Below the pieces are notes generated by a model. It was not told the origin of the DNA. It searched no databases and saw only the letters and a program-made list of their open reading frames with translations. Both the position numbers and the translations under genes were made by a program. From positions 551,045-615,044 of the forward strand of contig JAIVFI010000026.1 of assembly GCA_025558095.1 (NCBI GenBank): DNA of 64,000 nucleotides. Reading direction: 5' to 3'. The number at the start of each line of letters is the position of its first letter. The stretch's first letter is position 1. This document shows positions 43,195 through 62,079 of this stretch, piece after piece. Source of the stretch: Hyaloraphidium curvatum SAG 235-1 (Eukaryota > Fungi > Monoblepharomycota).

Positions 43195-44774
43195 TCAATA
43201 CCCATCCGCTGTTTCGATCCCGATGCCCGCCGCCCGCCGCCTTTTGCTCCCCGCCCCCTTCCGCGCTCGCTCCCACTCCCGGTAGCCCACGAACGGCCCC
43301 CTGCCCTTCACCAGCTCCGCGTACCCCCTCCTCCGCATCTCCTGCCCCATCTCCACCTCGATCGCCGCCCAGTCCGCACCCTCCTGCAACGCCGCCGCCC
43401 GCCGCACGATCTGCAGGAGATAGCACAGCGTCGCCTTGAGCCCGAGGTTCCTTGCGGCAAACCGCATGGCCCCCAGCGCCGTCCGCCGCGCGCGGGCGTC
43501 GTCCCCTCGCAGCCCCTCCACCGCGCGCCCGAGGTGCACCAGCGCGGGGGCGGCGTGGTCCCGGCCCGGTTCGAGGAGGAAGGTGTAGTGCTGCACGAAC
43601 GCCGAGTCGCGGGGGAGGATGGGGAGCATGCCGGAGGAGAGGAGGAAGAGGGTGCGGAAGGCGGCGCCGAAGCCGTCGGTGCTCACGGCGTAGCGGTAGC
43701 GGTCGGCCTGCTGCGGCATGGAGAGGCGGGAAGCGTTGCGGCAGTCTGCGGAAGGGGGGGCGGTAGGCCGATGACGGGGGCGAAGGATGCGCCGGACCCA
43801 CATTTGGCCACTACGTGCTCCTTGATCTCGGGGGTGAAGGACGCCGCCAGCGGGCCCAGGTCCTCGGGATCGCAGGATGCGTCGATCAGATCCGGCCGCA
43901 GCGAGCCCTGGTGCAGCACGGCGATCCGCGCCGTCTGCTGGGGCACGATCCCCGCCGGCCCGAAGTCGGGGGCGTTGAGCGCCCCGCGCCACACGGCGAC
44001 GGGGAGGCGGGACTCCCAGGGGGCCCTCCCGACCCAGTCGTTGACGGCGCGGGAGCGGTCGAGCAACGTGACGGCGTGGATCCAATCGGGGAGCAGGATG
44101 GCCTTGGAGCCGCGCACCTTGGAGGCGGCGAAGATGGGCAGCGTGGGGCCGGCGTCGGGGATGCCGTCTGCGGCGAGGAAGTGCAGCCGCGCGTCGGGCA
44201 CGCGGGCGCCGGCGGCGGCGACGGTGTCGAGCAGCAGCTGCACGAGCGGCAGCATCCACTTGCCGCCGTCGTGGCCGGCGGTGCAGGCTGCGCAGTTCTT
44301 GACGGTCAGGTTGCCGCCGACGATGCGGAACAGGTCGAGGTCGGCGTGGCGCACGGCGGTCTCGCGGAACAGCCGGGTGCGCACTTGCGGCGGGTCGCCC
44401 TTGTACGCCGCCCACGTGCCGAACTCGGCGTCGGCGTGCAGCCCGCCGGCAAAGTCGGATTGTGCGCACAGCGCGGCCTCGACGCCGTCGAGCGTTGTGG
44501 GGGCGGTGGAGGCGCGTAGTGGCGTTTGCGCGGGCGGCCACCCGCGCAGCTCGGCGGGCGAAAAGAGCAGCGACGCGTTGCGCAGCCGTGCCCGCAGCGC
44601 GGAGAGCTCGGCGTCCTCGGCCGCCGTCCACGAGCCCGGCGGGGCCGCCCGGCCGCGCGCGCCGCCGCTCCCAGCGTCCCGCGGCGGCAGCGCGCCGCAC
44701 GCGAGGGCAAAGAGCAGCAGCGTAGCCCATGCGGCGACCGCGGGGACGCCGACAGCGGAAAGCGGCGCACCCAT
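43195..44774 (-). CDS. Glycosyltransferase family 90 (CAP10-like); intron at 43746-43801
   Basis: N-terminal anchor; PWESRLPVAVWRGA; QQADRYRYAVSTDG..AFR..LLSSG; LEPGRDH; FA..NL..LCYL. Confidence 0.8.
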
Positions 44775-44822
44775 GCTTTGGCGAACGATTGGGCGGGGTT
44801 GTGTGGGCGAAAAAAGGACATC

Positions 44823-44835
44823 CATCAGACATTGG
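44823..44835 (+). repeat. Left copy of 13-bp direct repeat CATCAGACATTGG (candidate target-site duplication)
   Basis: Exact second copy at 54210-54222. Confidence 0.7.
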
Positions 44836-44852
44836 TGTGTAAACGGACCTCA

Positions 44853-46991
44853 ATGGACCCCCCTGACACAGGGCAGGGGCCCAATGATGCGGCCGCTCCC
44901 GTGGTCCTGCCTGATGGCAAGGTCTCCCCTGCGCTCGCCGCGGCCTCCTCGGAGGCGCTTGCGAATCCCGTCCACTCTTCCCACGCTCCCGGCGTCGCTG
45001 CCTCTCCTCGCCTCCCTGGCGCGGCAGAGGAGCCCGCGCCGGCCCCCGCTGGTGCTACGGCTCAGCTGACAGGTTCTAAGGAGGACGCTGCTGAATCGAC
45101 CACTGAAATCCGCCCCGCGTCCGCCAACGGCGGCGCCCGGGAGGAGCCGGCTCCGCAGAATCATCTCCCGAAAGCAACCGCCCCCGCCACGCGCCTGGGG
45201 TCTCGCTCTTTCGCCGCAGCAACGTCGCGCACCTCGCCCGACCGCCCGATTGTTCGTGTCACGGACGGCGCGATGGCGGAGCATCTGGCTTCTGCCATGC
45301 CTTTCTCGGCGCCCACCAACTACGCCAAGCTCATCGATCGGGTGCAACCGCACGCCAACGGTCGGGGCTACACGCCGGCCTTCATTGGGCCTGTCCCCCA
45401 CTGCCTCATCGACCTCAACGGTGTGCCAAAGGACCGACGGCGCGTCGTCGCCGAAGCCGTGGCGAAGGCGACCTTCCCCACCACCGTCTTCACGACCGAG
45501 ACGCGAGGCTACAACCCGCGTTACTCGCGACTGGACCTCTTCTGTGTTGTTGGTGCTGTCGACGGGGCAGACGCTATCAACGCCTTGGTGGAGCAGGGGG
45601 TGCTGGAGGTCAAGTTCCCAAACGGCCCGACGCGTCGGCTGCGCATCCACCCTGTCTTCAAGGACACGCACGCCGAGCTCAAGATCGGGCCCATGATCGT
45701 CCCTGGTTCGGTGCACGAGTGCCCGGACTGGTGGGCCCGCCTCTACGCGACTTTCCAGAACCACTATGGGGCCCCTTGCCAAGTCATTGAAGCGGCTCCC
45801 ATCTCGGGCACCGACAGCAACGCCTTCTGGCGGGTCACTTTCGACGTCTCGCAGTGCGGGGTTGATGCCTTCTTTGACCGCGCAGCACGCATTGGCCCAC
45901 CCTCGTACTGCTTCCTTGACTCGTGGGGGACACTCCTCCAGCACAAGCTCCTTCGCCCAGCTGTCCGCTATGACAGTAGCAACGGACAGTGCGGCCACTG
46001 CAAGCGCACGGGCGGCCACGTCGGTGACGATGCCACGTGCACCAACTGTGCTTACTGCCCAGACGGTCTCAACCGCATGAATCCCGGCGCCTTTGCCAGC
46101 CCGCAAGCACGCCGTGCGCACGAGGCGGACTGCATTCACAACCCGGCCAACGTACGGCTCTCTCCCCCAACGGTGGAGCCCGCCACGACCCCGCGGCTGC
46201 CCCCCCTGAGGGAAGAGGTCGTTCCTCCGCATCTGGCTTCCCCCACCGCCCCTGCGGCCAACGAGTGGCTTACAGCTGGGCCGTCCGGCAAGCGCGCAGG
46301 CTCTGCGCCCCCAGCTCTTGCCCAGCCAGTGGCCAAGGCGTCCCACAACAGGTTTTCGGCACTCGGTGGTGGTGGTGCCGGTGCTTCGGTCGATTGGGGG
46401 GAGTCTGACGCCGCCGAAAAGATGGATTTCCATGGTCTTCCCATTTTGGAGCCGGCTGACAAGGATGGGGACGAGGACATGGGTGGTGCCGACCAGCTGG
46501 CCGCTGAGAACGCCATCAGCAGTGCTGCACAGCAGGTTGCAGCCAATACCGCGCTGGAGGATCTGGAGCTTGCTGCTCCCGCAATGGAGGGCACGGAATC
46601 TGCGATGGAGGAGGATGCCACCGGCTCTGAGGCCTCGGGTGGAAACGACGCCGCCTCCGAAGCCTCTGCTGAGGGCGATGGTTCGAACTCGGAGGCACCA
46701 AGCGAAGACATGCACACGGCCGATGAGGCCGCTGGGGCATCCGCGGTTGGTGATCCTACGATGGCCCCAGGCCCCAAGCACGCAGGCAAGGGCCGTCCCG
46801 TGGAGGATGTGGCAGGGACAAACCCGGACAAGGTTGCCAAGCCGTATCAGCAAATCGACGTCAAATCCGCCAAAGCGGAACGGAAGGCCAAGGCGGCCGT
46901 TCGCAAGCTCGGCTCCCCCCAGGCCAAGGCCGCCTCCACGTCAACCGGATCCCTGCTGCCGGCTCCTGGCTCACCGTCCTTGAATGCCTAA
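44853..46991 (+). CDS. Retrotransposon ORF1 (gag-like, zinc knuckle)
   Basis: 712 aa; central globular region, then CGHCKRTGGH..C and CAYC..HEADC; acidic then basic disordered tail. Confidence 0.7.
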   Translation: MDPPDTGQGPNDAAAPVVLPDGKVSPALAAASSEALANPVHSSHAPGVAASPRLPGAAEEPAPAPAGATAQLTGSKEDAAESTTEIRPASANGGAREEPAPQNHLPKATAPATRLGSRSFAAATSRTSPDRPIVRVTDGAMAEHLASAMPFSAPTNYAKLIDRVQPHANGRGYTPAFIGPVPHCLIDLNGVPKDRRRVVAEAVAKATFPTTVFTTETRGYNPRYSRLDLFCVVGAVDGADAINALVEQGVLEVKFPNGPTRRLRIHPVFKDTHAELKIGPMIVPGSVHECPDWWARLYATFQNHYGAPCQVIEAAPISGTDSNAFWRVTFDVSQCGVDAFFDRAARIGPPSYCFLDSWGTLLQHKLLRPAVRYDSSNGQCGHCKRTGGHVGDDATCTNCAYCPDGLNRMNPGAFASPQARRAHEADCIHNPANVRLSPPTVEPATTPRLPPLREEVVPPHLASPTAPAANEWLTAGPSGKRAGSAPPALAQPVAKASHNRFSALGGGGAGASVDWGESDAAEKMDFHGLPILEPADKDGDEDMGGADQLAAENAISSAAQQVAANTALEDLELAAPAMEGTESAMEEDATGSEASGGNDAASEASAEGDGSNSEAPSEDMHTADEAAGASAVGDPTMAPGPKHAGKGRPVEDVAGTNPDKVAKPYQQIDVKSAKAERKAKAAVRKLGSPQAKAASTSTGSLLPAPGSPSLNA

Positions 46992-47835
46992 AACACCACC
47001 AAGCAAGTGGCAACGCCGAGTAGTGGGCTGCTCTTCTCGGCGCCGAGCTCGTCCGGATACCTCCCGGGCGCGGTCAGCCCCTCCATCTTTTGCTGTTTTG
47101 CAGTCTTCACCGGTACGCCAACTACCACTATCTACAACGTCTCACCGAGTTCCGAGGCCGTTCGCGGCAGCAGGGGAGACTTCCGACATTGACCCCGCGT
47201 CCCCCGGGGCCCCTCGGCCAAATGCCGTGCCTAGCTTGGCCGAGGGTCACACTCTGCCCACGCCGCCCCGCGGCTCCTCCCGCTTGCCGGCACCAGCGGG
47301 GGGGAAAGGGGCGGCATGCTCGGAAGTATCTCCCTCCTCGTCATCGCAGATCTTGATCGCTGATGCCCCGGCTTCGGCCGCTTCCATGCTCTCGGCGCAC
47401 CCAGGCCATCCTCCGTGGGAAACCCCAGCTGCAACCGCCGTGCCGAGCTTGCAGCTGCCGCCTGCGCCGCCCCGCACAACCCCCGGCACGCCGCCGGCAC
47501 CAACGGCCGGGGGGGGGCAGAGCTCCTCGGAAGTATCCACTCCGACGCGCACCTTGCCTCCTTGGTATGCTCACACGGAGCCCGGTTCGCCGGCGCACCT
47601 CGAATGGCCAGGTTCCGAGCTCCTCGATGACGGCGGCCGTGATGCTATCGGTGACGCGTGGTCGGCGCTTGCGGCCTGGCACAGGGCGGGGGGCGACCTG
47701 ACCGAGTCACAGGAGGTTTGGATGCGGACACATGCGCTCGACGATTGGGAGATCTCGTCGGACAAGGCACCGTCCGCGGTAGCTGATCCTGGCGGCGGGA
47801 CACCGGCATCGCCGCCGCCACCGTATTCGCCATGA
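46984..47835 (+). CDS. Middle ORF of the retroelement (283 aa, P/S/A-rich, Trp-rich C-terminus)
   Basis: Its ATG sits just before the ORF1 stop (ATGCCTAA), and its stop overlaps the RT start (ATGA). Confidence 0.4.
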   Translation: MPKTPPSKWQRRVVGCSSRRRARPDTSRARSAPPSFAVLQSSPVRQLPLSTTSHRVPRPFAAAGETSDIDPASPGAPRPNAVPSLAEGHTLPTPPRGSSRLPAPAGGKGAACSEVSPSSSSQILIADAPASAASMLSAHPGHPPWETPAATAVPSLQLPPAPPRTTPGTPPAPTAGGGQSSSEVSTPTRTLPPWYAHTEPGSPAHLEWPGSELLDDGGRDAIGDAWSALAAWHRAGGDLTESQEVWMRTHALDDWEISSDKAPSAVADPGGGTPASPPPPYSP

Positions 47836-50800
47836 GCCGCACGCCGCTCCTGCCTTACAGCTGCCACCGCTGCGCGGCAGCTTTCGCCAACATCGGAGCT
47901 CTATCTCATCATCACCAATCTTGCATCGACGGCGATGTGCCGATGGCGGAGGCGCCTGCTGAACCCGGCCTCCATGCGTGCCCGGTTGATGGTTGCCGCT
48001 TCCAGCCAACTCCAAACAAAAACAAACGGGACGGTCATCTTCGGGTCACACGGAGCCCGGAGCACTGGTTGGCGATGCAGCGCCTGTCTGCCGATGCGTT
48101 GCGCGCCATGGGGCTAGCGCGGTGCGGGGGTTGCCGGCGTCCCTACGCCGCAAACGCCTCTGGTGCCGGTGTTTCTGGACAGCACACCTCGTGCAACCCG
48201 GACGCAGCTAACCCGCCACTCGGCGTCTCTTTAGCTTCGCTTCCACCCGATCTCGTCGAGTTCCTCGACCGCGTGCGTGCCGAGCGGGCGGCTGCCACGG
48301 GACGCGCGGAGGGACCGGCGTCACCAGCGGCATCGTCGGCATCTCCCCGTGCTTCGCCACCCGCGCCCGCGCTGATGGCGGCCCTTGCGGCCGCCCGGGT
48401 TGCGGCCGACGCCCCGCAGGACGGCCAGGCGCAACGGGCGGCGCTGGCGGCGGCGGCGGCGGCGGCGCGTGCCGCCCCGGACGGCGGTGATCCCCCAGGC
48501 GGCGACGGCGCGCCGGGCGGCAACGCCGCGGCTGGCGGGCACGGCAACGGCGGTGATCCGGGCGACCCGGGCGACGGTGGTCCACCCGGGGGTCCCGGGC
48601 CTGATCCGCCGCCGGGCGGGGGCGCGGGGGCGCCGCCGCCGGAGCCGCTGAAGCACCGCTACCGGACCACCACCTGGAGCACGCTCGCCTTCCGGGCCAG
48701 CGAGTCTTTCCAACGGGCCTACGAGGACCCGGCGGCACCGGAAACCGACCTGCACCGCACTCTCACCGCCTACCTTGCGTTTGGCGGCTACGTCATGTCG
48801 GGGGACTACATGTACGAGCAGAACTACTTCGCCGCCCGTCAGGTCAACCGGGGCGCGCGGCGGGACGGGCTGCGGCCGCTCAACTACCAGCTCTTCAAGT
48901 CCATCGTGCTTGCCGCCTTGAAGGGCGCTCCTGGTGCTGCGTCCGCGGCCCTCTCGGGGGAGGCCGTTCCGGCTGGCTTCACGCCCACGCTTCAGGCGGA
49001 ACTGGAGGAGCTGTACCCGGGGCTGCGGGAGGGAGAGCCGCTGTGTCGGCTGTCTCTGCCCCCCAACGCGCCCGCGCCCTGCCCTGCCTACACGGACGCG
49101 GCTTTCCTGGAGGACATCTGGGCCCGGTTGCGCCGGAAGAAGGACGGCGTGGGGGCCGGCATGTCGGGTTTCAGCATGGCCAAACTTTTCATCGTGCACA
49201 ACTGCGAGAACGACGCGACGCGGCGGAAGCTCCGCCCGCTGGCGGCCATGGTGCATGGCGTGTGCACTGGCCGACTCGACACCCCCATGCTCCGGCCGCT
49301 CCTCACGGATCAAATCCTCGTCCCTCTGCTCAAGCCGGAGGGGGGGCTCCGGCCGATTGGCATTATGGAGGGCATCACGCGGCTCGCGGGCTCGTACCTG
49401 GCCGTGCGGCACAAGGCTCTTCTGAGGAAGCTCCAACAGCAGGAGGACCTGGGTCACGGGGTGGACGGGGGCGCGGAGGCGACCGCCCACGCGGTGAACG
49501 CGTGGCTGGCGGCCTTCCCCGACCACGTCGTCATGAAGGTCGACTCTAGGAACGCCTTCAATACGCTGCGCCGCCTCTTCGCGCGCGAGGTGGTCCGCCA
49601 GGTGCCTCAGCTTATCCCGTACTACAACCTCGTTTACTCGCGCCCTTCCCACGCCTACTTCCGCGACCGGCGCTCGGCGGAGCTCCTTTTCCGGATCACC
49701 ATGTACGAGGGCAACATCCAGGGCGACCCGCTGTCGTCTGCCATCTTCTCCTGCGCCATGAGCCGCATGCTGCGGCCCATCCGCTCTGGGCACCCCGACT
49801 GCCTCATCCTTGGGTACCTCGACGACCTCACCGTGGTCGGGCCGCTGGACTCGGTCATGGCCGTCCTGGGAGAGGTGCGTGACGGCCTTTCTTCCCTCGG
49901 CATGACCCACCGCCCGGACAAGAGCTACCTGCTTTCGCTCTCGACGAACCCGGCCGTGCTGGAGCGGGTGCGCGCGGCCGGTGCGGCCCACAACATCCGC
50001 GTCGCTGGCTTCCCGCCTCACGAGGCCGACCCCGAGGTGCATGCCACGGCGTCGGCCCCGGGCTCGCCTGACTTCGCTCGCTCGTGCGGCCTCAAGGTGG
50101 TAGGTGCCCCGGTCGGCACCCCTGCCTATGTGGAGTCGTTCCTCGCGGCCAAGATCGACTCCATTGCCGCTCTTCTCGATGAAATCGAGCGCGCCGCGCT
50201 CGGCTACGCCATGCCGGCCGACATCCCCTCCCTCCAGGGCCTGTACTCCCTCCTCCGTCTCTGTGTGACCCAGCTCTTCTCGTTTTGGCTCCGCATTCTC
50301 CCCCCCTCGGTTACCCAACCCTTTGCTCGACGTCTTGACAACGCGCTTTTCACCACCTTCTTGCGCTTGCTGGGAGATCGGGCCGAGGCTCTGGATCCGC
50401 TGTCGGTGGAGGGTCGGACTGTGCGGGAGCAGGTATTCTTGGGTCTGCACTACTCGGGGATGGGGCTTCTGTCATCGGAGAAGGTGGCCTCGGCGGCTTA
50501 CCTGTCTTCACTCAACCTCACGGCGGGCCCCTTGGACGCCATGCTTGGTCTTCGAACCTCGGCCCGGGGTGTGGGCGTGGAGCACGTGCGGGAACTGGTT
50601 CCCGTCATCGAGGCCCTCCGCCCCGCCTTTGAGCGTGTCGAGGATGACACGGCCGCAGCGTACGCCGAGGCTGCGCGTGCTGGGCAACCGGTGGGCGCCG
50701 CGCCCGCCCGCCGTACGCTCCCTGCGGACGCCAGTTTCTTCGCTCAGCCGGTCTGGCACGGCCTGCAGAGCGACCTTACGCGTCTCGAGGACCAGCGCCG

Positions 50801-51422
50801 CCTCGCGGCTCTGATTGCCTTGCAACCCGACACTTCCGCTGGTCTGGAGCGCCGCAAGCGGCTCGTCCAGGCGCAGGACGGCCTGTCGGCTTTCCTGACT
50901 GCCTCTCCCGCGCTGCTTGCCAACCACATTCGCAACAACTTTTTCCGCTTACTTGTCCGCTTCCGGCTTTGCCTCCCGCTCCTGCACGAGGCCGACTACC
51001 CTGGTCTTTCCTTGCCCTGCCGGCGGGGCTGCAAGCGATCGGCCATGTCGCTGACGGGGGAGCACGCGTTCTCGGGCTGCTATGGCCGGGATCTCTTCAG
51101 TCCTGGTCACGACGACATTTGCGCGGCCATCCGCGCGGCGCTTCGCTCCATCCCGCTCCTCCGCGTGCACCCCATGCCGCCAAACCTCCTTGCGCATGGC
51201 TACGAGACTGTCACCCCGCCCACGCCTGCGGATGCTGGCCGCCTTGGCGACGTTCTCATCACGCACCGCGAAACCCGGAAACGGTGGTTGCTCGAAATCA
51301 AGACCCTCACCTCTATGGCCCATTTGCACGCGGGCCTGGTCTTCTCGGTCCCGTTCTTCATACACTGCTATCTTCCCCGCCCCGCCCCCCCGCCCCGCCG
51401 CTCGCACATGATCGCCCGTTGA
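47832..51422 (+). CDS. Reverse transcriptase with N-terminal zinc fingers, CCHC motif and partial restriction-like endonuclease
   Basis: CHRC..HHQSC, CPVDGC..H; GLRPIGI, GGAE, VDSRNAFN, QGDPLS, GYLDD, GAPVG; CRRGC..HAFSGC, HDD, RLGDVLI..LLEIK. Confidence 0.92.
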   Translation: MSRTPLLPYSCHRCAAAFANIGALSHHHQSCIDGDVPMAEAPAEPGLHACPVDGCRFQPTPNKNKRDGHLRVTRSPEHWLAMQRLSADALRAMGLARCGGCRRPYAANASGAGVSGQHTSCNPDAANPPLGVSLASLPPDLVEFLDRVRAERAAATGRAEGPASPAASSASPRASPPAPALMAALAAARVAADAPQDGQAQRAALAAAAAAARAAPDGGDPPGGDGAPGGNAAAGGHGNGGDPGDPGDGGPPGGPGPDPPPGGGAGAPPPEPLKHRYRTTTWSTLAFRASESFQRAYEDPAAPETDLHRTLTAYLAFGGYVMSGDYMYEQNYFAARQVNRGARRDGLRPLNYQLFKSIVLAALKGAPGAASAALSGEAVPAGFTPTLQAELEELYPGLREGEPLCRLSLPPNAPAPCPAYTDAAFLEDIWARLRRKKDGVGAGMSGFSMAKLFIVHNCENDATRRKLRPLAAMVHGVCTGRLDTPMLRPLLTDQILVPLLKPEGGLRPIGIMEGITRLAGSYLAVRHKALLRKLQQQEDLGHGVDGGAEATAHAVNAWLAAFPDHVVMKVDSRNAFNTLRRLFAREVVRQVPQLIPYYNLVYSRPSHAYFRDRRSAELLFRITMYEGNIQGDPLSSAIFSCAMSRMLRPIRSGHPDCLILGYLDDLTVVGPLDSVMAVLGEVRDGLSSLGMTHRPDKSYLLSLSTNPAVLERVRAAGAAHNIRVAGFPPHEADPEVHATASAPGSPDFARSCGLKVVGAPVGTPAYVESFLAAKIDSIAALLDEIERAALGYAMPADIPSLQGLYSLLRLCVTQLFSFWLRILPPSVTQPFARRLDNALFTTFLRLLGDRAEALDPLSVEGRTVREQVFLGLHYSGMGLLSSEKVASAAYLSSLNLTAGPLDAMLGLRTSARGVGVEHVRELVPVIEALRPAFERVEDDTAAAYAEAARAGQPVGAAPARRTLPADASFFAQPVWHGLQSDLTRLEDQRRLAALIALQPDTSAGLERRKRLVQAQDGLSAFLTASPALLANHIRNNFFRLLVRFRLCLPLLHEADYPGLSLPCRRGCKRSAMSLTGEHAFSGCYGRDLFSPGHDDICAAIRAALRSIPLLRVHPMPPNLLAHGYETVTPPTPADAGRLGDVLITHRETRKRWLLEIKTLTSMAHLHAGLVFSVPFFIHCYLPRPAPPPRRSHMIAR

Positions 51423-51432
51423 GCCCCGCTCA

Positions 51433-51794
51433 CTATCCCCGCACTATCGTGGCCCGGCGAGCGACCGGAGCCCGACGTCCTCCCCCGCCGCCCGCCCGCG
51501 CGCCGTACGCCGCCTCCAACAGCTTCCCCAGCGCCGCCGCCCCGTCCTCGAACGCCCGCTCGCCTACCCCGTCCCTGCCGTGCGCCCCGTCCAACTCCGC
51601 GCCCGCGACCCGAGCCCGTGCTGCGACCCGGCGGGCGAACTCGAGCTGCGGTGGGACAGGGGTGCGTGGGAATCGCCCGGCCAGGGCACCCAAGACCGAG
51701 AAGGAGGTCTGCACGTCCTCGGCGAGGCCGGACGTGACGGGGTCCAGGGGAGAGGAGGGTGAGGAGCCGCCGACGAGTCGGTGGTAAAGGAATA
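51433..51794 (-). pseudogene. Orphan 3' fragment of a host-like gene
   Basis: Host-like codon usage (LAEDVQTSFSVLGALAGRF..IVRG*); cut at an LTR-like end; no matching 5' part in the window. Confidence 0.45.
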
Positions 51795-52178
51795 TGTTGA
51801 TCAAAGTGACGCGGGCCAGAGAGCCCACTAGGGGGGCGGCGGGATAGAGCCGCGGGTTCAGGCCGACACCCTCAGAGCGCGGTGCGAGGCGTCGATCCGG
51901 TCGCCACCCGACGCTCCATCTCCTCCCCCGGCAGCGGCGCCTTCCCGTGCCGATCTTCCCCACTCTCTCTCTGAGGGTCCTTCCCGGCATCAACGCGATA
52001 CGGAGCGTCGGCGGGGCACCCTCAGAGCGCGGTGCGAGGCGTCGATCTGTCAGGACGGGGCGCGGGGGACCCGTAAAGACCTGTGTTGACGACGTTGAGG
52101 AGTCACTACACAGCACTGCGCCAAGTCTTCCCTCGCCGGGGACCACCGTCCCCCTTGCCCCGACGCCGGCGCGTTACA
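51795..52178 (-). repeat. 3' LTR of the Gypsy remnant (alternative inner end at 52048); includes a 31-bp direct repeat
   Basis: On the minus strand a G-run polypurine tract and TGA precede TGTAACG; it ends ..CCTGACA (52048) or ..ATCAACA (51795); CACCCTCAGAGCGCGGTGCGAGGCGTCGATC occurs at 51867 and 52017. Confidence 0.6.
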
Positions 52179-53867: not shown

Positions 53868-54166
53868 TGTCAGGAGAGGTCGTGGGAGACCAGTCCTGGC
53901 CTGCGGGGCACGGAGAACGGGAGCACGGAGTACAAGGGCTTGTAACTCTATCCGAACGTTCGGGGAATACATGTGGAGATCTATGGGTTTATATAGTCCG
54001 AGCCGTGCAAGTTGAGGCGCAGTCCGGATCGAACTTGCGAGAAGCCGACTGTAATGAGGAGCTAGCAATCCCACCGTACACTTAGAAATCCCCCTACGCC
54101 CCAAGAATCAGCTCCTCATCTACATTCAAACCAAATGCGACCGGCGCGGGGGCCGGAGCGTTGACA
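53868..54166 (-). mobile_element. 299-bp solo-LTR-like unit of a different family, interrupting Gypsy pol
   Basis: TGTCA..TGACA inverted termini; TATATAAA on the minus strand near 53990; lower GC; flanks GCTTC/GCGGC do not form a TSD. Confidence 0.65.
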
Positions 54167-54209
54167 GCGGCGGCTTCGGTGCACAGCTGAAGCCAGTGTT
54201 GGAGTTGGG

Positions 54210-54222
54210 CATCAGACATTGG
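54210..54222 (+). repeat. Right copy of 13-bp direct repeat CATCAGACATTGG
   Basis: Exact match to 44823-44835. Confidence 0.7.
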
Positions 54223-54365
54223 AAAAGGTGTTTCAGCCCGCGCAGACCGGTTGGCGCACTGCACGAAAAGGACGTTCCGGTCGATACTCGAAAAGGACGT
54301 TCAAATTGGACGGCGCGATTTTGAGCCCATTTTGTCTATCTCGGCCCACCTTCGGACGACCCGGA

Positions 54366-56306
54366 TCACACCGCGATCCCGCGCATCCCGCGCGCCCCCA
54401 TCTCCGCCCACATGTCCCCCTCGTCGCCCGCGACCGCCGCCCACGAAGCCTTCCTCAGCAAAAACGGCGCCCCGGGTTCCGCCGGTGCCTCCCTGCCCTC
54501 CACCCCGCACGCCGGCCCGGGCACCGCGAACGCCGCGACGGTGTTCTGCATTGCCTTCAGCATCGCCGCGAGGCAGGCTTGTGTGAGAGGCCTGCCGGGG
54601 GAAGGAAAGTAGACCAGGTGGGCGAACGAGAGGTGCACCGCGAGGTCGAGCAGGCCCGTGGGATCCGACGCCGCGGCGCGCAGGTGCAGCACGCGCGCAC
54701 ACTTGCCTGCGTTGAGCGCCGCGATGACGCCGGAGGGGAACGGCGTACCGGGCAGCTCCACCGCCACCACCTCGATGGCGGCTCCGGCAGGCAGATCGGC
54801 CTCCTCCCAGGTCACCGTGCGCATCAGCACCGCCGCCAGCTCCGGCACCCCCCTCGCCTTGCCCTCAAACACCACCTCGTGCCCGACCATCTCCGGCGGC
54901 ATCCTCGGCCCTTCCCCCACCACCCCCTCCTGCTCCTCCGCCAGCCTCCGCGCCTCCATCCCGTCCCCGCGCTTCCCCGCGAGCACGCTACGGAACGCCA
55001 GGTCCAGCATCCTCGCCCTCCGCTCGGGGGAGTACCTCCACAGCACGGAGTGCCTCGCTGCCCGCCCGGCCCCGCGCCTCGCCCGGGCGTCCGAAAGCAG
55101 CAGGTCCAGCGCGTCGTACCACCCCCCGTCGTCGCCGGCGAGGAACCCGTTACCGGCGTGGCGGATGGCCGGGACGAACGGGCCCACAGGCGACGCGACC
55201 GTCGGCACCCCCGCCAGCGCGGCGTCGAAGAACTTGAGCTCCGACTTGGAGGAGGTGAACGGGTTGCCGGTCTGCAGCGGGGCGATGTTGACGTCGAACC
55301 GGCACAGCTCGTACGGCAGGTCGGAGTAGTTCACGGCCGGGCGGTGTTCGAGCTGCGCCTCGAGGCCGGGGAACTCGGCCGGGTCGAGGTTGGCACCAAA
55401 GTACACGAGCCGCGCGTGCGGGCGCTCGCGGAGCACCCGGCGGAGGGCGGGGTAGGCTGCGCGGAAGTCGCGCTGGTGCGTCGGCGTGCCGGATGCGTAG
55501 CCGATCCTTAGCAGGGTGTCGTTGGCGTCCTTCCGGCACGCGTCGACGTTCGCGCGGTCGCTGGCCTCAAGAAAGGCGCGGTCGAAGGTGTTGGGAACGA
55601 CAAAGGTGGTCAGGTTCCACCTGCGCATGGTGACGGCGAGGTCCTGCGTCGAGGCAAGGCCAAAGTCGGCCATGAGCATCGCCTTGAGGTTGGCGTCGCA
55701 CATGGCCTTGATCGCGGGCAGCGCCTCGGGATGCTGTCTCACAAAGTCGAAGTGGTCCGTGTCGACGATGGACGAGTCGATCACGAGGTCGTCGAGGTCG
55801 TACCCGACGGGGATCCCGCGGTCCCGGGCCAGCCGCACGAGCTTCTCGTAGGCGGGCGAGTGCTCCATCCGCCAGACCACGAGCAGCTCGGCCCCGCCCA
55901 CCGCGGCCTCCACGCGGTCCCAGGACTCGGCGAGGTCCGACATGCCAAACACGTTTGTGCGGTAGCCGGCCAGGTTTGCGGCGGCGGCGGCGCGCACAAC
56001 GCGGTGCTCGGAGCCTGCGTAGAAGGTCGTCTCGTAGGAGATGAAAACGACGAGCGGGGCGGCGGCGGGGGGGCCGGGGGCGGGATCGCGGGTGGAGGGC
56101 GGGACGGCGGGCTGCGGGGAGGGGAGCGGCGGCGGGGGCGGTGCCGGTTGGGGTTCCGGCGGGGGTGCCGCCGGCCGGGGCAGGTCCGCGGCGTGCGGCA
56201 CGGGGGCTGCCGGCGCGGGGAGATCCCGCGGGCCCAGGATCGCGAGCCCCACCAGCGCCGTGACTGCGGCGGCGCCGAGCAGCGACGCCGACAGCCGCGC
56301 CCGCAT
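54366..56306 (-). CDS. Type II membrane glycosyltransferase, bacterial GT4-like
   Basis: N-terminal TM plus Pro-rich stem; YDLDDLV, VVPN, RIGYASGTPTHQRDF, DVNIAPL..NPF..KSELKFFDAALAGVPTVASP; intronless. Confidence 0.88.
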   Translation of the reverse strand: MRARLSASLLGAAAVTALVGLAILGPRDLPAPAAPVPHAADLPRPAAPPPEPQPAPPPPPLPSPQPAVPPSTRDPAPGPPAAAPLVVFISYETTFYAGSEHRVVRAAAAANLAGYRTNVFGMSDLAESWDRVEAAVGGAELLVVWRMEHSPAYEKLVRLARDRGIPVGYDLDDLVIDSSIVDTDHFDFVRQHPEALPAIKAMCDANLKAMLMADFGLASTQDLAVTMRRWNLTTFVVPNTFDRAFLEASDRANVDACRKDANDTLLRIGYASGTPTHQRDFRAAYPALRRVLRERPHARLVYFGANLDPAEFPGLEAQLEHRPAVNYSDLPYELCRFDVNIAPLQTGNPFTSSKSELKFFDAALAGVPTVASPVGPFVPAIRHAGNGFLAGDDGGWYDALDLLLSDARARRGAGRAARHSVLWRYSPERRARMLDLAFRSVLAGKRGDGMEARRLAEEQEGVVGEGPRMPPEMVGHEVVFEGKARGVPELAAVLMRTVTWEEADLPAGAAIEVVAVELPGTPFPSGVIAALNAGKCARVLHLRAAASDPTGLLDLAVHLSFAHLVYFPSPGRPLTQACLAAMLKAMQNTVAAFAVPGPACGVEGREAPAEPGAPFLLRKASWAAVAGDEGDMWAEMGARGMRGIAV

Positions 56307-56440
56307 GCCTGCGATTCGGGGCGGCGCAAACAGTTGTAATTGGGGGCTGGGGGCGGGCTGGTGGGGAGGGGCAGGGACACATGCCCCTAATAATCATCAA
56401 ACACCGACACTCGGCCGGGCGAGCGACGCCCTGCGCGGCC

Positions 56441-58132
56441 ATGCGTGTCTTGGCGCTCCTCGGTTCGCTGGCGGCCCTGGCGGCGGGCTGCGCCGCCGCC
56501 CCGCCACGCTCCGCCGCCCTCGCCCGCGAGATCCCGCCCGCCGCCGCGCTCGACGCCGTGTCGCCGTCCGGGCTTGCGGGCTGGGCGTGCGTGCCCGGCG
56601 TTCCCGGCGACGGCGTGCGGCTTGTCGCCCGCGCGAACGGCGCCGAGGTTGGCCGCGCCCGCTTCGCCGTGCCGCGGCCGGACGTGCTCGCCAGCGTCGG
56701 CGCGGCGTGCGGGGGATGGAAGGCGCCCGGCTTCGAACTGCGCTTCGACCCGCCGCTCAACGACCGCACCGTGCTGCAGCTCGCAATCGCGCTGCCCGCT
56801 GGCCGCGAGCTCCCGTTCCCCGAAAAGCCCGCCGTCGACGTCGGCGTCCGCAGGCGCGAGACCGTCGACGTCACCCTCGGCGGGCACGCGCGACGCCGCC
56901 GCCCCCTCAACGTGACACTGGACGACGCCCAGCCCGTGCGGCTCAACATCCTCGTGTGCGCCCTGGGCAACTCGGCATTCACCGGCGGCCCGCTGTCGAT
57001 CATGCGCTTCGCCGTGCTGGCTTCCCGTGCCGGGTTCGCCGTGCGGTGGATCAACGTCGACGGCGGCGGCGTGCCCTGGGCGGACTTGGCCACCGCGGCC
57101 GCCAAGTACCCACTTTTGGAGAAGCTCGCAGACGAGCTCGAGTTCGTCGACGACGCCCTGGGCTTCTCCGCCGGGACGCCCCCGCCCGTCGTCCCCGCAA
57201 ACCCCGGCGACCTGTTCATGGGCACCCTCTTCTACACCGTCCTCCAGGCCCGCGCGACGGTCGCCGCCCACCCCGGCCTGCGCAACCGGAACGTCGTCAA
57301 CTTCGTGCAGGACGACGAGGGCATCTTCTTCCCGCACGGCACCTCGCACCTCGAAGCGCGGGAGGCCCACGCCGGCCCGCACTTTCCCATCTTCTCCACC
57401 GACTTTCTCCGCTCGCACTTTGAGTCCAACCGCGTCGGGCTGTTTGCGCACTGCCACCCCGCCGAGTGCGCCGAGCTCCACTTTTCCGCGCAGCCCGCCA
57501 TCCGGCCCCGCGCGCCCTTCGACCCCGCCCTCTTTGCGCCCAACCGCACCAGGAGGCTCATCATGTACGCACGCCCGCTGCACGACCGCAACGCGTTCGA
57601 CCTCGGCGTCCTGGCGCTGGACGAGGCCGTGCGGAGGGGCATCTTCGGCCCGCGCCTCGAGGAACGGTGGGAGTTCCTGGGGGTGGGAAGCCACGCCGAG
57701 CACGCGGACCAGTGCAATCTCGGCGGCATCAGGGGCATGTGCCTGCAGATGCGCCCCTCGGTCCCCGAGCCCGAGTACTTTGCCCTGCTCGGCACGGGGG
57801 ACGTCGGGCTGGCGCTGATGGTCTCGCCGCACCCGTCGCTGCCGCCGCTGGATTTCGCGGCGGCGGGGATGGCCACGGTGACCAACACGTGGGGGAGCAA
57901 GACCGCCGAGGCGCTGCGGGCGGCAGGGGGGAACCTGATTCCCGCCGAACCAACGCTGGAGGGACTGGTGGCCGCGTTGGAGCAGGCGGTGGCAAGGGCC
58001 GAGGATGTGGAGGGCAGGATGCAGGGGAGTAGGCTGGACTGGCCCGAGAGGTGGGACGATCCCAGGTGTTACGGGGCGCCGCTGTGGAGGAGGATGCGGA
58101 GGTGGTTCGCGACCACCAATGCGCTGTGGTAG
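56441..58132 (+). CDS. WsaF-like (rhamnosyltransferase-type) GT-B glycosyltransferase with signal/anchor
   Basis: RLNILV..FTGGP, FVQDDEGIFF, YARP..RNAFDLG, WEFLGVG, DVGLALMVSPHPSLPPLDFAAAG..VTN; intronless. Confidence 0.85.
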   Translation: MRVLALLGSLAALAAGCAAAPPRSAALAREIPPAAALDAVSPSGLAGWACVPGVPGDGVRLVARANGAEVGRARFAVPRPDVLASVGAACGGWKAPGFELRFDPPLNDRTVLQLAIALPAGRELPFPEKPAVDVGVRRRETVDVTLGGHARRRRPLNVTLDDAQPVRLNILVCALGNSAFTGGPLSIMRFAVLASRAGFAVRWINVDGGGVPWADLATAAAKYPLLEKLADELEFVDDALGFSAGTPPPVVPANPGDLFMGTLFYTVLQARATVAAHPGLRNRNVVNFVQDDEGIFFPHGTSHLEAREAHAGPHFPIFSTDFLRSHFESNRVGLFAHCHPAECAELHFSAQPAIRPRAPFDPALFAPNRTRRLIMYARPLHDRNAFDLGVLALDEAVRRGIFGPRLEERWEFLGVGSHAEHADQCNLGGIRGMCLQMRPSVPEPEYFALLGTGDVGLALMVSPHPSLPPLDFAAAGMATVTNTWGSKTAEALRAAGGNLIPAEPTLEGLVAALEQAVARAEDVEGRMQGSRLDWPERWDDPRCYGAPLWRRMRRWFATTNALW

Positions 58133-58522
58133 GCATGCACATCGGCACACATAGACGGGCCGTCGGAGTCGCCCCCGTGCAACACCCCGTGTAGGGTCCT
58201 GAACCCTTCAACCCCTTTCCGCGGCAACACGGACATGTTCTGCAACCTCGACCAGAGCAATGCCGGGCAGGTCGGAAGCACCAATGTTCTCCCGGGGAAC
58301 TTCCAGCAGGAAGGGATGTGCGAGAAAAACGGGCCCGACACCGTCTACGGCTGCTGCCTGCCGAAATGATATACCCCCGTCCCGGAAAATGTCACGCCTT
58401 CGCCCGCCTTCATCCTCGTCGCTCAGATGCCCTCGGGTCCTTCCACGCGCCTGGACCGGGACGCCTGCCTCATCGGTTGCGGGGCCGCCGGCCGGCTGGG
58501 CATCCGCATCCGTCGTCCGCCG

Positions 58523-60889
58523 CTACATCGGCCCGTCCATCGAGCACTCCCGCAGGTGGTTGTACACCTCCCTCGCCATCCCCTCCGCCGTCGGCCTCCT
58601 CGCCTTTTCCAACATGTGCGCCGACGCCCTCCTCACCGCGCCGTCGTCCAGCCCCTTGGCCAGATCCCACACGTTCCGCTCGAGCCCGGTCTCGCCGTAG
58701 AAGAGGGGGTACGAGAAGCCGAGGTGTTCCTCCGCCGCGGGGCTGACGGGCATCGGATCGGGGGAGCGGGGGATGATGGCGGGGGTGCCCGCCGCGATCG
58801 CCGCGAGCAGGAGCGGGGGGGCGTGCGGCTGGTGGTAAGGGAGGAGGAGAACCGACGTGCGGAGGAGGGCGAGGAAGGAGGGGAGGTCGGGGACGGGGAG
58901 GAAGGCGGCGCTGGAGTTGCCCCACGCGGCGCGGAGGGCGGGTTCGGAGGAGAGGGAGGGGTCGTAGGCGACGGTTTTGGACCAGCCGGGGGGGAGGGGC
59001 AGGGTCGCGAGGAGGGCATGGGTGTCGCGGCCGCCGTACTCGACGGCAGGGGCGACGACGGTCCGGCCGCCGGCTTTCCACGCCGCGAGGTCGAACTTTG
59101 TGCCGCCCAAGTCGGGGAGGGGGTGCCCGACCGAGCGCACCCGCGCCGCCGAATCGCGCGAGCGGGCCAGGCCGCGGCGGAAGACGTCCGCGGCGTCCTC
59201 GGTGAAGGTGATCACGAGGTCCAGCCGCGGTCGGATGGCAGCAAAGGCGGGGGAGGCGAGCAGCTGCTCCGCCGTCGTGGTGCCCTCGACCGCACGGCCC
59301 TTCGCGGGGGTTGCGCCGTGGAAGAAGCCGACGACCCGGGAGGCGCCGTCGGCGACGAGGGGGTGCCTCTCCGCGCCGGGGGCTGCGAGGTGGTCCAGCG
59401 AGAGGGCAAGGACGTGGCGCGGGGGCGTCCGCGCGCCGCCGGGGCGGACAAAGACCCCGGTCTCCACCATCCGCCTCGCGAAAAGATCCCACTGTCGCCC
59501 AAACAGCCCGTTGCCGCCCAGTTCGGGCCCGCGGGGGTCGAATTGGCTGGGGGCCGACCACGAACTCGCCCCGCCCAGCGCCTTGCCCAGCACGAGGCCC
59601 TCGGGCACCTCGACGCGAGCGAGGAGCGTCCGCTCGAGGAACGCGAACCAGTTCCGCTTGAAACCGAGGAACGCGTGGCCGCCCAGGGGGCGCTCGGAAT
59701 GGTACGTGTGCTCCACGAGGACGCGGGCGGCGGCGCGCGGCGCGACGCGGCCGACCCCGCGGACGCCCAGGGCGTACGAGAAATAGATGTCCTCGGGGGG
59801 GTACTTCAAATCGTGGATGAGCACGGCCTTGGTGGCCTCGGTGAGGTTGAGGGACGAGGGGTGCACGCGGTCCAGCGCCTCGACCATCTTCAGGCGGGTG
59901 CGGAGGGAGAGCCCGCCGTTGCCGACGGCTTCGAATCCCTCGGTGACGAGCGTGTTCCACGGCGCACCGGCGAAATCGTATGGGAGCAGGTCAGCGATGC
60001 CGGAGCGGAAGAGCGCGCTGTCCTCCTGAAACAGAAGCACGCGGTCGCCGTGCAGCGACAGCCAAAAGTCGCGGTTCAGCGCGACGCGGTCGTTGAAGTG
60101 CGCGACGGACATGTCGGCCATGCCCGTGTCGACGACGCGGGCGAGGGGGGAGACGCGGGCGGCTGCGGCGCGCAGGGCCGGGCAGCTCTTGGAGCCGCAG
60201 AAGACGCGGAGCGACCAGCCGGGGCCGAGGTAGCGAAGCGCGGTGCGGATCACGAACTCGGCGTGCGGAAAGTCGCGATGCTCGAGGATCACGGCCTCGT
60301 GCGTCGCCGCGGCGGGCGTCTGCGGGTACGGCGGGAGGTCGAGCAGCAGCGACTGGGCGAGGTGGCGGAAGCAGAAGTAGCGCCACGGCCATTTCGTCGA
60401 GCCGTCCCACAGGCTGACGTCCTTGACGGCGAAGTAGGAGGCATTGAGGTCGGGGAAGCCGTAGCGCGCGGCGAACGCGGGCAGCCGGGCAAAGTGGGCG
60501 AGGTCGGCCGTCCCCGCGATGCCGAGGCGGGCGAGGGACGACTGCAGCTGAGACGCGGCGGCGCGCACGGCCGGGTCGGCGAGCAGCTCCGACATCGTCC
60601 GGTCGGGGGAGGAAGGGGCCGCGAGCAGCGCCAGTTCGGGGAGCAGGCCCGCGCCGCCGGCGTCCGCCGTGCCCCCCCCCTCCCCAAGCAGCGCGTCGCG
60701 CGACGGCCGCCACGGCGCGGAGTGGTCGCCGTCGGGCGGTGGCGGCCCCGCGGTAGACGCGGGCGGCCACTCGTCCCTCGGCGGCGCCGTCTGTCCCGGG
60801 CCCCGCAGCGACGCCGCGAGCAGCAGCACCGCCGCGACGCCGAGCACTCGCGCCGCCCACCGCAGCGACGGCGGCACGAGGCGCGGCAT
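58523..60889 (-). CDS. Type II membrane protein: DUF5672-like domain plus C-terminal GT-like domain
   Basis: VILEHR, FW..L.GDRVLLFQEDS, YDFAGAPW, VGNGGLSLR, PEDIYFS; C-terminal HP..KFD..W, GTP.I..AAEEHLG.SYPLFY; intronless. Confidence 0.8.
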   Translation of the reverse strand: MPRLVPPSLRWAARVLGVAAVLLLAASLRGPGQTAPPRDEWPPASTAGPPPPDGDHSAPWRPSRDALLGEGGGTADAGGAGLLPELALLAAPSSPDRTMSELLADPAVRAAASQLQSSLARLGIAGTADLAHFARLPAFAARYGFPDLNASYFAVKDVSLWDGSTKWPWRYFCFRHLAQSLLLDLPPYPQTPAAATHEAVILEHRDFPHAEFVIRTALRYLGPGWSLRVFCGSKSCPALRAAAARVSPLARVVDTGMADMSVAHFNDRVALNRDFWLSLHGDRVLLFQEDSALFRSGIADLLPYDFAGAPWNTLVTEGFEAVGNGGLSLRTRLKMVEALDRVHPSSLNLTEATKAVLIHDLKYPPEDIYFSYALGVRGVGRVAPRAAARVLVEHTYHSERPLGGHAFLGFKRNWFAFLERTLLARVEVPEGLVLGKALGGASSWSAPSQFDPRGPELGGNGLFGRQWDLFARRMVETGVFVRPGGARTPPRHVLALSLDHLAAPGAERHPLVADGASRVVGFFHGATPAKGRAVEGTTTAEQLLASPAFAAIRPRLDLVITFTEDAADVFRRGLARSRDSAARVRSVGHPLPDLGGTKFDLAAWKAGGRTVVAPAVEYGGRDTHALLATLPLPPGWSKTVAYDPSLSSEPALRAAWGNSSAAFLPVPDLPSFLALLRTSVLLLPYHQPHAPPLLLAAIAAGTPAIIPRSPDPMPVSPAAEEHLGFSYPLFYGETGLERNVWDLAKGLDDGAVRRASAHMLEKARRPTAEGMAREVYNHLRECSMDGPM

Positions 60890-61215
60890 CGCGTAAATGG
60901 ATTGGGGATAGTAGGACGCGCGGCCCTTTCCCGCCACCCTCTGCGAAGAAAGCGCCGGCCGCCTGCCGAACCGGTCTGCGGATGTGCTCGACTAGGAAGA
61001 GAGATTTTGGGCTCCGGCGATGTTGATTGTCGACCGATCGCCCGGACCCGCCTTGTATGGACCCCGGCCGAAGCCTGATTCCGCCGAAACCGCCACAGAG
61101 TGTACAGCGGGTGCATAGAACCGCGCTAGTAAAGAGTACATCACTTCTACTCTCCCGGCCTGCACAGTCGACATCAGGAGTTTGGCCCGGACACGTCAGC
61201 TCTGGTCGACTTAAT

Positions 61216-62079
61216 TCAAACGTCATGGTAGATCGCTTCGCACGAGTCTTCAAGCGGGCCCGCGGGAGAGCCCAACGACACCCACTCGTCCACAGGCAGC
61301 TGTAGAAAGTCCAAGGAGCCAGCGGTCCGCGATGTGGGTCCGTGTTCGCCGTGCAGCGCACGGACCCACGGAAACAAGGGGTCAGGGTCGGCCCAAAGGG
61401 GGGTGCCGCACACAGCGAAGCACGCGGCAGAGAGGGAAGGAATGAACAGGTCAGGAATCAATGCAGGTTCCTGGTCCTCGAGGAGTGATGTCGGGATCGG
61501 GGGGAGGGAGACGACGCGCGGGAAGCTGGAGGGGGCCAGCGGACCCACGGAGGGCAGTGTGCGGCCGTCGCCCGACCCTGGGGTAGCCGCCGACCCGGCA
61601 TCCGTGCTGCTCGGCGGCTCCTCCGCAGGTCCGCAGTCGTCGGAGTCGGAGGCGTCCCCATTGCCTGAAGAGGCCGAGATGTTCTCGGAGGCGCACTTCC
61701 GGGGCATCCTGGGCGGCGGGTACTCGCACACGGCCCCGGCGGCTTCGCAGCGTCCGCAACCCCTACGGTCCCCGTCGCAACCCCTGCGCGAGGCCCTGCA
61801 GCGCACGCACGCCGTCTTTTCGACGGCGAGGGAGGCGCCCAGCGCCGCGGCGGCCCGGAGGTACGCCGCCGCCGAGGGTGCGGTGGCTGCCCGGACGCCG
61901 CAGGCCGAACCTTCCGGCCACGCGCAGGGGAATCCATGGGAGCGACAGCGTCCGCAGGTGCCGCCGTCGCGGGGGCATTTGACCCTCCTGACACGGCAAG
62001 CCCAACACGCGGCGGTCCGAACTCGCGGCGGGCGCTGCGCCCGTGCGAACATGCCCTGGCTCGGGGGAGCGCGCGGCAT
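61216..62079 (-). CDS. Transcription factor with two Zn(II)2Cys6 binuclear clusters
   Basis: ACWACRVRRVKC..CGRC..C and ACVRCRASRRGCDG..CGRC..CEY. Confidence 0.85.
   Translation of the reverse strand: MPRAPPSQGMFARAQRPPRVRTAACWACRVRRVKCPRDGGTCGRCRSHGFPCAWPEGSACGVRAATAPSAAAYLRAAAALGASLAVEKTACVRCRASRRGCDGDRRGCGRCEAAGAVCEYPPPRMPRKCASENISASSGNGDASDSDDCGPAEEPPSSTDAGSAATPGSGDGRTLPSVGPLAPSSFPRVVSLPPIPTSLLEDQEPALIPDLFIPSLSAACFAVCGTPLWADPDPLFPWVRALHGEHGPTSRTAGSLDFLQLPVDEWVSLGSPAGPLEDSCEAIYHDV

Follow-up and report, generated by a model that had tools for sequence, protein, structure and literature searches.

The stretch analysed here (hereafter, the window) comprises 64,000 nucleotides of the genome of the monoblepharomycote fungus Hyaloraphidium curvatum SAG 235-1 (assembly GCA_025558095.1; 31.9 Mb in 55 contigs, ~68% GC) and represents the terminal 64 kb of contig 26 (JAIVFI010000026.1, 615,044 bp), with the end of the window coinciding with the end of the contig. 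It contains genes for four putative glycosyltransferases (GTs), referred to below as the GT90-like, GT4-like, WsaF-like and DUF5672 genes, which are interrupted by a 9.4-kb retroelement insertion and become, once this insertion is removed, four consecutive genes for anchored proteins in the order just given. Our results indicate that this grouping is a real, non-random subtelomeric cluster of GTs predicted to act in the secretory pathway, and we put the odds that its members build one glycan at about even (a probability of roughly 0.5). The features that make up the cluster are as follows (positions are those of the window):

43195-43745, minus strand: exon 2 of the GT90-like gene, the C-terminal part including the stop codon (Pfam Glyco_transf_90)
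43746-43801, minus strand: intron of the GT90-like gene, 56 nt, with GT..AG borders (read from the sequence)
43802-44825, minus strand: exon 1 of the GT90-like gene, with an N-terminal membrane anchor whose hydrophobic peak starts at residue 25 (identity to paralogs, hydropathy)
44823-54222, no strand assigned: composite retroelement insertion (Pfam RVT_1, Integrase_H2C2, rve, Chromo, SH3_Tf2-1)
54366-56306, minus strand: GT4-like gene, intronless (Pfam Glyco_trans_1_4, E 3.5e-9)
56307-56440, no strand assigned: spacer of 134 bp separating the divergently transcribed GT4-like and WsaF-like genes, a presumed bidirectional promoter (gene coordinates)
56441-58132, plus strand: WsaF-like gene of the GT-B type, intronless, with a signal-peptide-like N-terminus (Pfam WsaF_C, E 1.7e-34)
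58523-60889, minus strand: DUF5672 gene, a predicted bifunctional GT, intronless (Pfam DUF5672, E 1.2e-16)

Genuine coding frames were told from the spurious open reading frames (ORFs) of GC-rich DNA by their GC content at the codon positions; that is, real genes in the window show a GC content of about 0.85-0.94 at third positions (GC3) and of about 0.55 at second positions. The four GT genes have GC3 values of 0.87-0.92, equal to those of host genes, and are therefore long resident, with none of them newly arrived, which rules out recent horizontal transfer of the four. All four encoded proteins carry a hydrophobic segment within the first ~30 residues (Kyte-Doolittle 19-residue mean of 1.7-2.1), followed in the GT4-like and DUF5672 proteins by a proline-rich stem, and Golgi type-II enzymes are commonly built in this way. 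With a signal or type-II anchor at every N-terminus, all four proteins should face the lumen of the endoplasmic reticulum (ER) or the Golgi, with both this location and the enzymatic activities being predictions from sequence. Taken over the four proteins, five GT domains look intact, and in addition there is the GT2 remnant of the GT4-like protein, which is dead (see below); NCBIfam models gave nothing useful for any of the four. A preliminary description of the locus, made from its letters and without database searches, had drawn this gene layout correctly on every point that we checked, coordinates included: the four adjacent membrane- or signal-anchored GT-type genes agree with the Pfam matches, fold matches and hydropathy, and the three intronless genes (GT4-like, WsaF-like and DUF5672), the 134-bp spacer between two divergent genes and the position of a double Zn2Cys6 gene directly beyond the GTs were all found as described.

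The grouping of the four genes is far beyond chance. The four GT families have at least ~1, 5, 13 and 20 loci, i.e., ~39 in total as a lower bound, in the 31.9 Mb of the assembly, which corresponds to an expectation of ~0.01 loci per 8.2 kb, the span of the cluster without the insertion, and the four are expected to occur together with a probability of ~1e-5 genome-wide (a rough value that assumes uniform placement). In a scan of ~25 further frames from the window and the 30 kb preceding it, no GT was found.

The GT4-like protein consists of an N-terminal anchor, the proline-rich stem, a GT4 domain of the GT-B fold (about residues 85-450; 37.5 bits vs. a cut-off of 27 for Glyco_trans_1_4) and a C-terminal part related to GT2 (about residues 500-646). 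Its GT4 domain shares 39-46% identity with bacterial homologs across ~365 residues and keeps all of the ~50 columns that are invariant among 20 such homologs. The C-terminal part showed no match to Pfam GT2 models and, compared with the intact paralog on contig 10, reads 'IEVVAVEL' instead of 'IEVIAVDD' and 'LVYFPSPG' instead of 'AMILDADN'; because both acidic motifs, DxD included, have been lost (VDD to VEL and DAD to PSP), this part is a dead remnant. A word-based search recovered 167 relatives of the protein, mostly GT4+GT2 proteins in which a methyltransferase domain may or may not be present, and the named ones (e.g., from Gluconacetobacter, Halochromatium, Rhodospirillales and Planctomycetia) are all bacterial save H. 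curvatum's own paralog. A scan of bacterial and archaeal genomes gave at least 540 loci with relatives, of which 79 were kept at 37-45% identity, with the named ones again all bacterial. In a FastTree phylogeny of 121 sequences, the three GT4-like paralogs of H. curvatum and one metagenome sequence (P0034, on contig L017, discussed below) form one clade (SH-like 99), which fits one acquisition followed by duplication. Since the named relatives are all bacterial, the GT4-like enzyme is of bacterial type, having gained a eukaryotic anchor and a proline-rich stem.

The WsaF-like protein is single copy in the H. curvatum genome and scores 119 bits for WsaF_C (cut-off 27) and 21.8 bits, i.e., under the cut-off of 27, for WsaF_N; it also matches the solved WsaF structure 2x0e in a phmmer comparison (E 1.4e-18, residues 154-488). 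The sequences closest to it (42-49% identity) are a bdelloid-type rotifer protein and unnamed ones, and among the latter P0004 and P0005 are encoded on contigs with eukaryote-like gene content. In the tree, the window gene groups with a P0019/L017-type sequence (95/98), apart from the bacterial clade, and a separate, long-branched clade unites the four sequences recognised as bacterial from their name (P0020 only) or their domain architecture; in the ESM Atlas, bacterial sequences make up 95-100% of the large WsaF-family clusters. The neighbourhoods of the other WsaF-like relatives, i.e., of the rotifer gene and those on metagenome contigs, revealed no shared neighbours except for an O-FucT gene beside P0005. 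The earlier proposal that bacterial-type GT domains had received Golgi-style anchors thus holds for the GT4-like gene at least. The WsaF-like gene belongs to a thinly populated clade that includes the rotifer protein and eukaryote-like contigs. In assemblies of the rotifer Rotaria magnacalcarata, the WsaF-like gene is intronless, has 42% identity to the window gene and is located beside a hAT/ZBED transposase; by its looks, this family member too was acquired horizontally.

The residues by which WsaF contacts its substrate have been listed in a review (PMC9415975), and a HMMER alignment allowed their state to be read in the window protein. The diphosphate contacts G63 and R249 are kept, and so are V282-G283 and the SPHPS-PPL motif, whereas the rhamnose contacts K225, N227 and Y329 are replaced by A, R and L, respectively, and E333 is replaced by D. 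The thymidine contact K302 has become S and L303 has become V, which would fit a different nucleotide. The WsaF-like protein keeps the fold of the family, with no indication of rhamnose specificity. The preliminary description had suggested looking for genes of nucleoside diphosphate (NDP)-rhamnose synthesis, and here the H. curvatum genome gave no match for RmlC (dTDP_sugar_isom), while its best, and only, RmlD-like gene (contig 30, 87805-88980) is ambiguous: it scores 67.7 bits vs. a cut-off of 224, was matched equally well by MAT2B and has neighbours unrelated to glycans. Rhamnose is therefore not indicated by the replaced contacts, the absent RmlC or the ambiguous RmlD-like gene. We also considered, and set aside, rhamnose as a conclusion from the bacterial context, since all 12 of the bacterial genomes examined encode RmlC but 11 of 14 control genomes do so as well, which makes its presence uninformative; RmlC lay within 10 kb of the bacterial GT4 homolog in one clear case among the 12.

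The divergent GT4-like and WsaF-like genes recur together elsewhere. Specifically, a metagenome contig of 6141 bp (L017, from ENA) encodes a WsaF-like protein (44-63% identity) and a GT4-like protein (48-53% identity) in the same divergent layout, this layout is also seen in the genes listed for another metagenome contig (from the Joint Genome Institute, JGI), and the window genes have L017-type sequences as their nearest neighbours in both the GT4-like and the WsaF-like tree. Because the same arrangement recurs on an environmental contig, at least this pair appears to be conserved outside the H. curvatum genome. A bacterial protein (P0146) in which a GT4-like domain (42% identity) is fused to a WsaF-type domain joins the same two families, and searches with the two window proteins returned no named fungal relative besides H. 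curvatum's own paralog.

The DUF5672 protein shows an N-terminal anchor, a DUF5672 region (about residues 160-430; 61.2 bits vs. a cut-off of 24.4) and a C-terminal domain that is assigned to no family (about residues 440-788). The DUF5672 region keeps all 18 columns that are invariant in a 30-sequence alignment, and the AlphaFold2 (AF2) model built from this alignment (predicted local distance difference test, pLDDT, of 91.6) gave top Foldseek matches that are all of the GT-A fold, with probability 1.0 (C2GnT/core-2 GlcNAc-T, ABO/GT6, glycogenin and LARGE1). The model of the C-terminal ~350 residues (pLDDT 68) matched solely GT-B/GT4-type structures, namely, BshA, SdgB, MshA and WaaG. As both halves model as GT folds, the gene is predicted to encode two transferase domains, one GT-A and one GT-B, in agreement with the earlier reading of 'DUF5672 plus GT-like', and DUF5672 may now be read more generally as a GT-A-fold transferase domain. 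A word-based search with the fusion protein gave one weak match, and an exhaustive search was used instead; it recovered 1,552 relatives of the DUF5672 part, the sole full-length one being a paralog on contig 21 of the same genome. The DUF5672-GT-B layout recurs on contigs with giant-virus-like gene content.

Assignment of the GT90-like gene is likely but indirect. Its two exons have a total length that is a multiple of 3; exon 2 alone scores 23.2 bits for Pfam GT90 (PF05686), vs. a cut-off of 24, over profile positions 212-324, and exon 1 searched on its own showed no match to the same model. Membership of this CAP10/POGLUT-type family follows from the resemblance of exon 1 (40-47% identity) to three contig-21 paralogs that lie in frames scoring 57-70 bits for GT90, i.e., above the cut-off. 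The insertion next to this gene combines a plus-strand non-LTR (long terminal repeat) reverse-transcriptase element with a minus-strand gypsy integrase/chromodomain fragment, and is bounded by a 13-bp direct repeat, catcagacattgg, at 44823-44835 and 54210-54222. This repeat, a target-site duplication, includes the ATG of the GT90-like gene, so that the retroelements now sit 10 nt upstream of the start codon and sever the gene from the 143-bp spacer that formerly separated it from the GT4-like gene. Since the open frame of the GT90-like gene is intact despite the insertion, the insertion is probably young, or else the gene is probably now driven from inside the element.

The cluster is not unique but is one case of a pattern found across the H. 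curvatum genome. For instance, the 420-440 kb region of contig 21 carries a GT2+GT4 fusion, the DUF5672-GT-B paralog, an EGF-repeat protein, a GT90 and a GT61; this region (420001-440000) has a GC content of 56-59% and a weak codon GC3 bias, compared with 68% GC for the genome, and may be compositionally distinct or foreign. Further along the same contig, at 551-555 kb, a GT90 gene and a GT4 gene are found with an NDP-sugar dehydratase-type gene (552.6-553.3 kb) between them, and on contig 24 (225-229 kb) a GT4 gene lies near the top match of the genome to the GDP-mannose dehydratase family. Contig 21 also carries most of the GT90 copies. The NDP-sugar dehydratase/epimerase family gave 38 exon-level matches genome-wide, seemingly many for a fungus, several of them beside GTs.

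The gene that follows the GTs towards the end of the contig had been taken in the preliminary description as the regulator of the cluster:

61216-62079, minus strand: double Zn2Cys6 gene, 287 aa (Zn_clus, E 5.1e-15, two stretches)

It is encoded on the same strand as the DUF5672 gene, 326 bp upstream of it, and its product contains two canonical C-x2-C-x6-C-x6-C-x2-C-x6-C clusters, with no Fungal_trans domain detected in its 287 residues. At least 96 Zn_clus matches are found in the genome, many near contig ends, and several genes have two clusters. Its closest paralogs, with 56% and 45% identity, are located on the same contig 25 and 15 kb before the window and have Fungal_trans (transcription-factor), CN_hydrolase (nitrilase) and ADH (dehydrogenase) genes as neighbours, with no GTs among them. 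With this many matches genome-wide and the closest paralogs beside non-GT genes, control of the cluster by this factor is not supported; the link of the gene to the GT cluster is by adjacency alone. The window gene and these paralogs (contig 26, 525499-526257 and 535502-536152) make up a small double-Zn2Cys6 family confined to the last 90 kb of the chromosome arm; double-Zn2Cys6 genes are also found on contigs 4, 8, 16 and 35.

How might the four enzymes work together? If the anchors act as predicted, all four would be placed in the lumen of the ER or Golgi and would act in succession on one secreted or wall-bound glycan, with the divergent GT4-like/WsaF-like pair and its common 134-bp promoter region as the core of the system. 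The GT4-like enzyme would descend from bacterial multidomain (GT4+GT2, with or without methyltransferase) polysaccharide synthases through a single acquisition, followed by three duplications, and the window copy would have lost its GT2 activity. The DUF5672 gene would contribute the GT-A and GT-B fusion, a layout otherwise seen in giant-virus-like contigs. The even odds that we give to a common pathway, as opposed to the grouping itself, reflect several observations that weigh against it. Conservation elsewhere was seen for the pair only and not for the four-gene set, and L017 carries an esterase-like gene beyond its WsaF-like gene, where the window has the DUF5672 gene. Each of the two L017 genes also shifts frame once (at ~2640 and at ~4075-4112), with no intron-like gap, which reflects either assembly error or decay; in the gene list of the JGI contig, both genes are split into ORFs as on L017. 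Among the 79 bacterial loci with a GT4 homolog, only two have a WsaF-like gene, and a distant one (23-24% identity), within 10 kb, so that co-transfer of the pair from one bacterial locus was rejected as a general explanation, even though the fusion protein P0146 exists. The window contains no gene for sugar-nucleotide synthesis or transport, and a k-mer comparison of the four upstream regions revealed only one common 12-mer, CGCAGACCGGTT (at 54241 and 60969), which was equalled in 10 of 100 shuffles and is thus not significant as a shared promoter box. Finally, the retroelement 10 nt upstream of its ATG may have uncoupled the GT90-like gene from the others.

Alternatively, it is possible, albeit less likely in our view, that the four genes are merely co-located; that is, the subtelomere gathers lineage-specific, acquired and duplicated genes, the enzymes serve separate glycans, and only the pair represents a functional unit. 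The subtelomeric site and the retroelements inserted within the cluster speak for this hypothesis, and so do the paralogs that three of the families each have elsewhere, in other contexts, synteny that extends beyond this genome for the pair only and the lack of a significant promoter motif in common. However, it has to accommodate four unrelated GT families within 8.2 kb, at the ~1e-5 estimated above, as well as the similar GT grouping on contig 21 (420-440 kb), which points to selection for clustering over accident. A further hypothesis would make the cluster the leftover of an integrated giant-virus glycosylation module: DUF5672 occurs with the same C-terminal GT-B domain on contigs with giant-virus-like content, and the GC content of the related contig-21 cluster, 56-59%, is atypically low. 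The window genes, however, are host-like in both GC and GC3, family scans of the coding-like frames of the window revealed no virus-specific family, and the relatives of the GT4-like protein are bacterial, all of which make such an origin very unlikely.

The preliminary description had gone further and proposed a rhamnan- or xylose-containing coat whose synthesis the adjacent double Zn2Cys6 factor would activate. This model draws on the membership of one gene in the WsaF family, on the resemblance of the pair to WsaF, a beta-1,2-rhamnosyltransferase, and the multidomain WsaE with which it works (PMC9415975), and, for the regulatory part, on the Zn2Cys6 gene directly upstream. We found neither the proposed chemistry nor the proposed control supported and consider the model very unlikely. 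The contacts that would be expected to hold rhamnose have been replaced (K225, N227 and Y329 by A, R and L, and E333 by D) together with K302 (by S), RmlC is missing from the genome, the RmlD-like gene reaches 68 bits vs. 224 with MAT2B fitting equally, and GT90 membership is weak and has no bearing on xylose. As for the regulator, the neighbours of its two paralogs (56% and 45% identity) are genes for transcription factors, nitrilase and dehydrogenase, not for GTs, and a factor of just 287 aa that is devoid of a Fungal_trans domain argues against control of the cluster. Hence, among these hypotheses we favor a subtelomeric cluster of secretory-pathway GTs that would act on one glycan.

Among the closest known systems to which the pair can be compared is the S-layer glycan (slg) locus of Geobacillus stearothermophilus, where WsaF extends the glycan together with WsaE, a protein composed of a methylase and two rhamnosyltransferase domains (PMC9415975). 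As in slg, a GT-B protein of the WsaF family is encoded beside a multidomain GT, the window protein keeps the G63, R249, V282-G283 and SPHPS-PPL positions of WsaF, and the bacterial relatives of the GT4-like gene, being GT4+GT2 proteins with or without a methyltransferase domain, resemble WsaE in their multidomain build. Unlike slg, the host is a eukaryote and both proteins have secretory anchors, the rhamnose contacts of the WsaF-like protein are replaced and the second GT domain of the GT4-like protein is dead, and there are no ABC transporter, oligosaccharyltransferase or rml genes near the window cluster. Adjacency of the two families is rare in bacteria, with the two loci of 79 and the one fusion protein mentioned above. 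It is tempting to view the pair as a bacterial chain-extension pair for O-polysaccharide or S-layer glycan (WsaE/WsaF-like) that was adapted to the Golgi lumen, has stayed together in two or more eukaryotic lineages and gives this early-diverging fungus a surface polymer with bacterial-style repeats, to which the GT90-like and DUF5672-GT-B enzymes would contribute by priming or decoration, but we regard this scenario as speculative and, on balance, unlikely.

Glycan gene clusters are the rule in bacteria and rare in eukaryotes. To our knowledge, the galactosaminogalactan (GAG) cluster of Aspergillus is among the few fungal examples, and the wall chemistry of the lineage to which H. curvatum belongs is, as far as we know, essentially unstudied. 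The earlier statement that no such cluster is described in fungi does not hold, given both the other GT clusters of this genome and the GAG cluster as a precedent, which consists of five genes (uge3, gtb3, agd3, ega3 and sph3) in Aspergillus and Metarhizium (PMC8224951). The genes for GAG, an exopolysaccharide, form a compact cluster under common regulation that parallels bacterial systems (PMC8224951, PMC8647848), and the window cluster would be comparable in this respect. In contrast to the GAG cluster, with its one large synthase, epimerase, deacetylase and hydrolases, the window cluster comprises four Golgi-type GTs of entirely different families, with no modifying or sugar-nucleotide enzymes among them.

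Closer to home, the contig-21 cluster shares with the window cluster the back-to-back arrangement of mostly intronless, anchored GTs from unrelated families, and its full-length DUF5672-GT-B relative has 36-38% identity to the window gene. It differs in that only the window cluster has the single-copy WsaF-like gene and a bacterial-type GT4-like gene, and is subtelomeric and split by retroelements, whereas the contig-21 cluster has a much lower GC content. The fusions on giant-virus-like contigs have the same two domains as the DUF5672 protein and the C-terminal motif ...E.LG..YP(L/M)F in common with it; unlike them, and at only 13-24% identity in the C-terminal domain, the fungal protein has a type-II anchor and a host-like composition. 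H. curvatum thus appears to hold several GT clusters, and the one in the window mixes GT families of bacterial, giant-virus and eukaryotic type that all seem to have been refitted with secretion anchors. WsaF-like enzymes with altered sugar-contact residues exist in a sparse clade that includes the rotifer and eukaryote-like contigs. If the members of the cluster do cooperate, the enzymes that assemble one surface glycan in this lineage could be predicted from the positions of their genes, and polysaccharide synthases that are cytoplasmic in bacteria would have been redeployed into the Golgi lumen.

Two further features mark the limits of the locus:

42693-43100, plus strand: C-terminal exon of an RPA2 (RPA32)-like gene (Pfam RPA_C, E 8.6e-14; OB-fold-like stretch upstream)
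63845-64000, plus strand: telomere, (TTAGG)n (Tandem Repeats Finder: period 5, 31 copies)

The RPA2-like gene is a housekeeping gene, convergent with the GT90-like gene, and represents the centromere-side boundary outside the cluster. On the other side, the telomere begins 1.8 kb past the double Zn2Cys6 gene, with a WW-domain gene in between, the coding-like sequence of which extends right to the telomere repeat. The repeats at the window end are TTAGG pentamers and not TTAGGG; TTAGG is the arthropod-type telomere unit. Finally, a gene 13 kb away from the cluster (28224-30407, plus strand) encodes a right-handed beta-helix protein of 728 aa (NosD, Beta_helix and a GH141 insertion domain), which is a possible candidate for a polysaccharide lyase or hydrolase.

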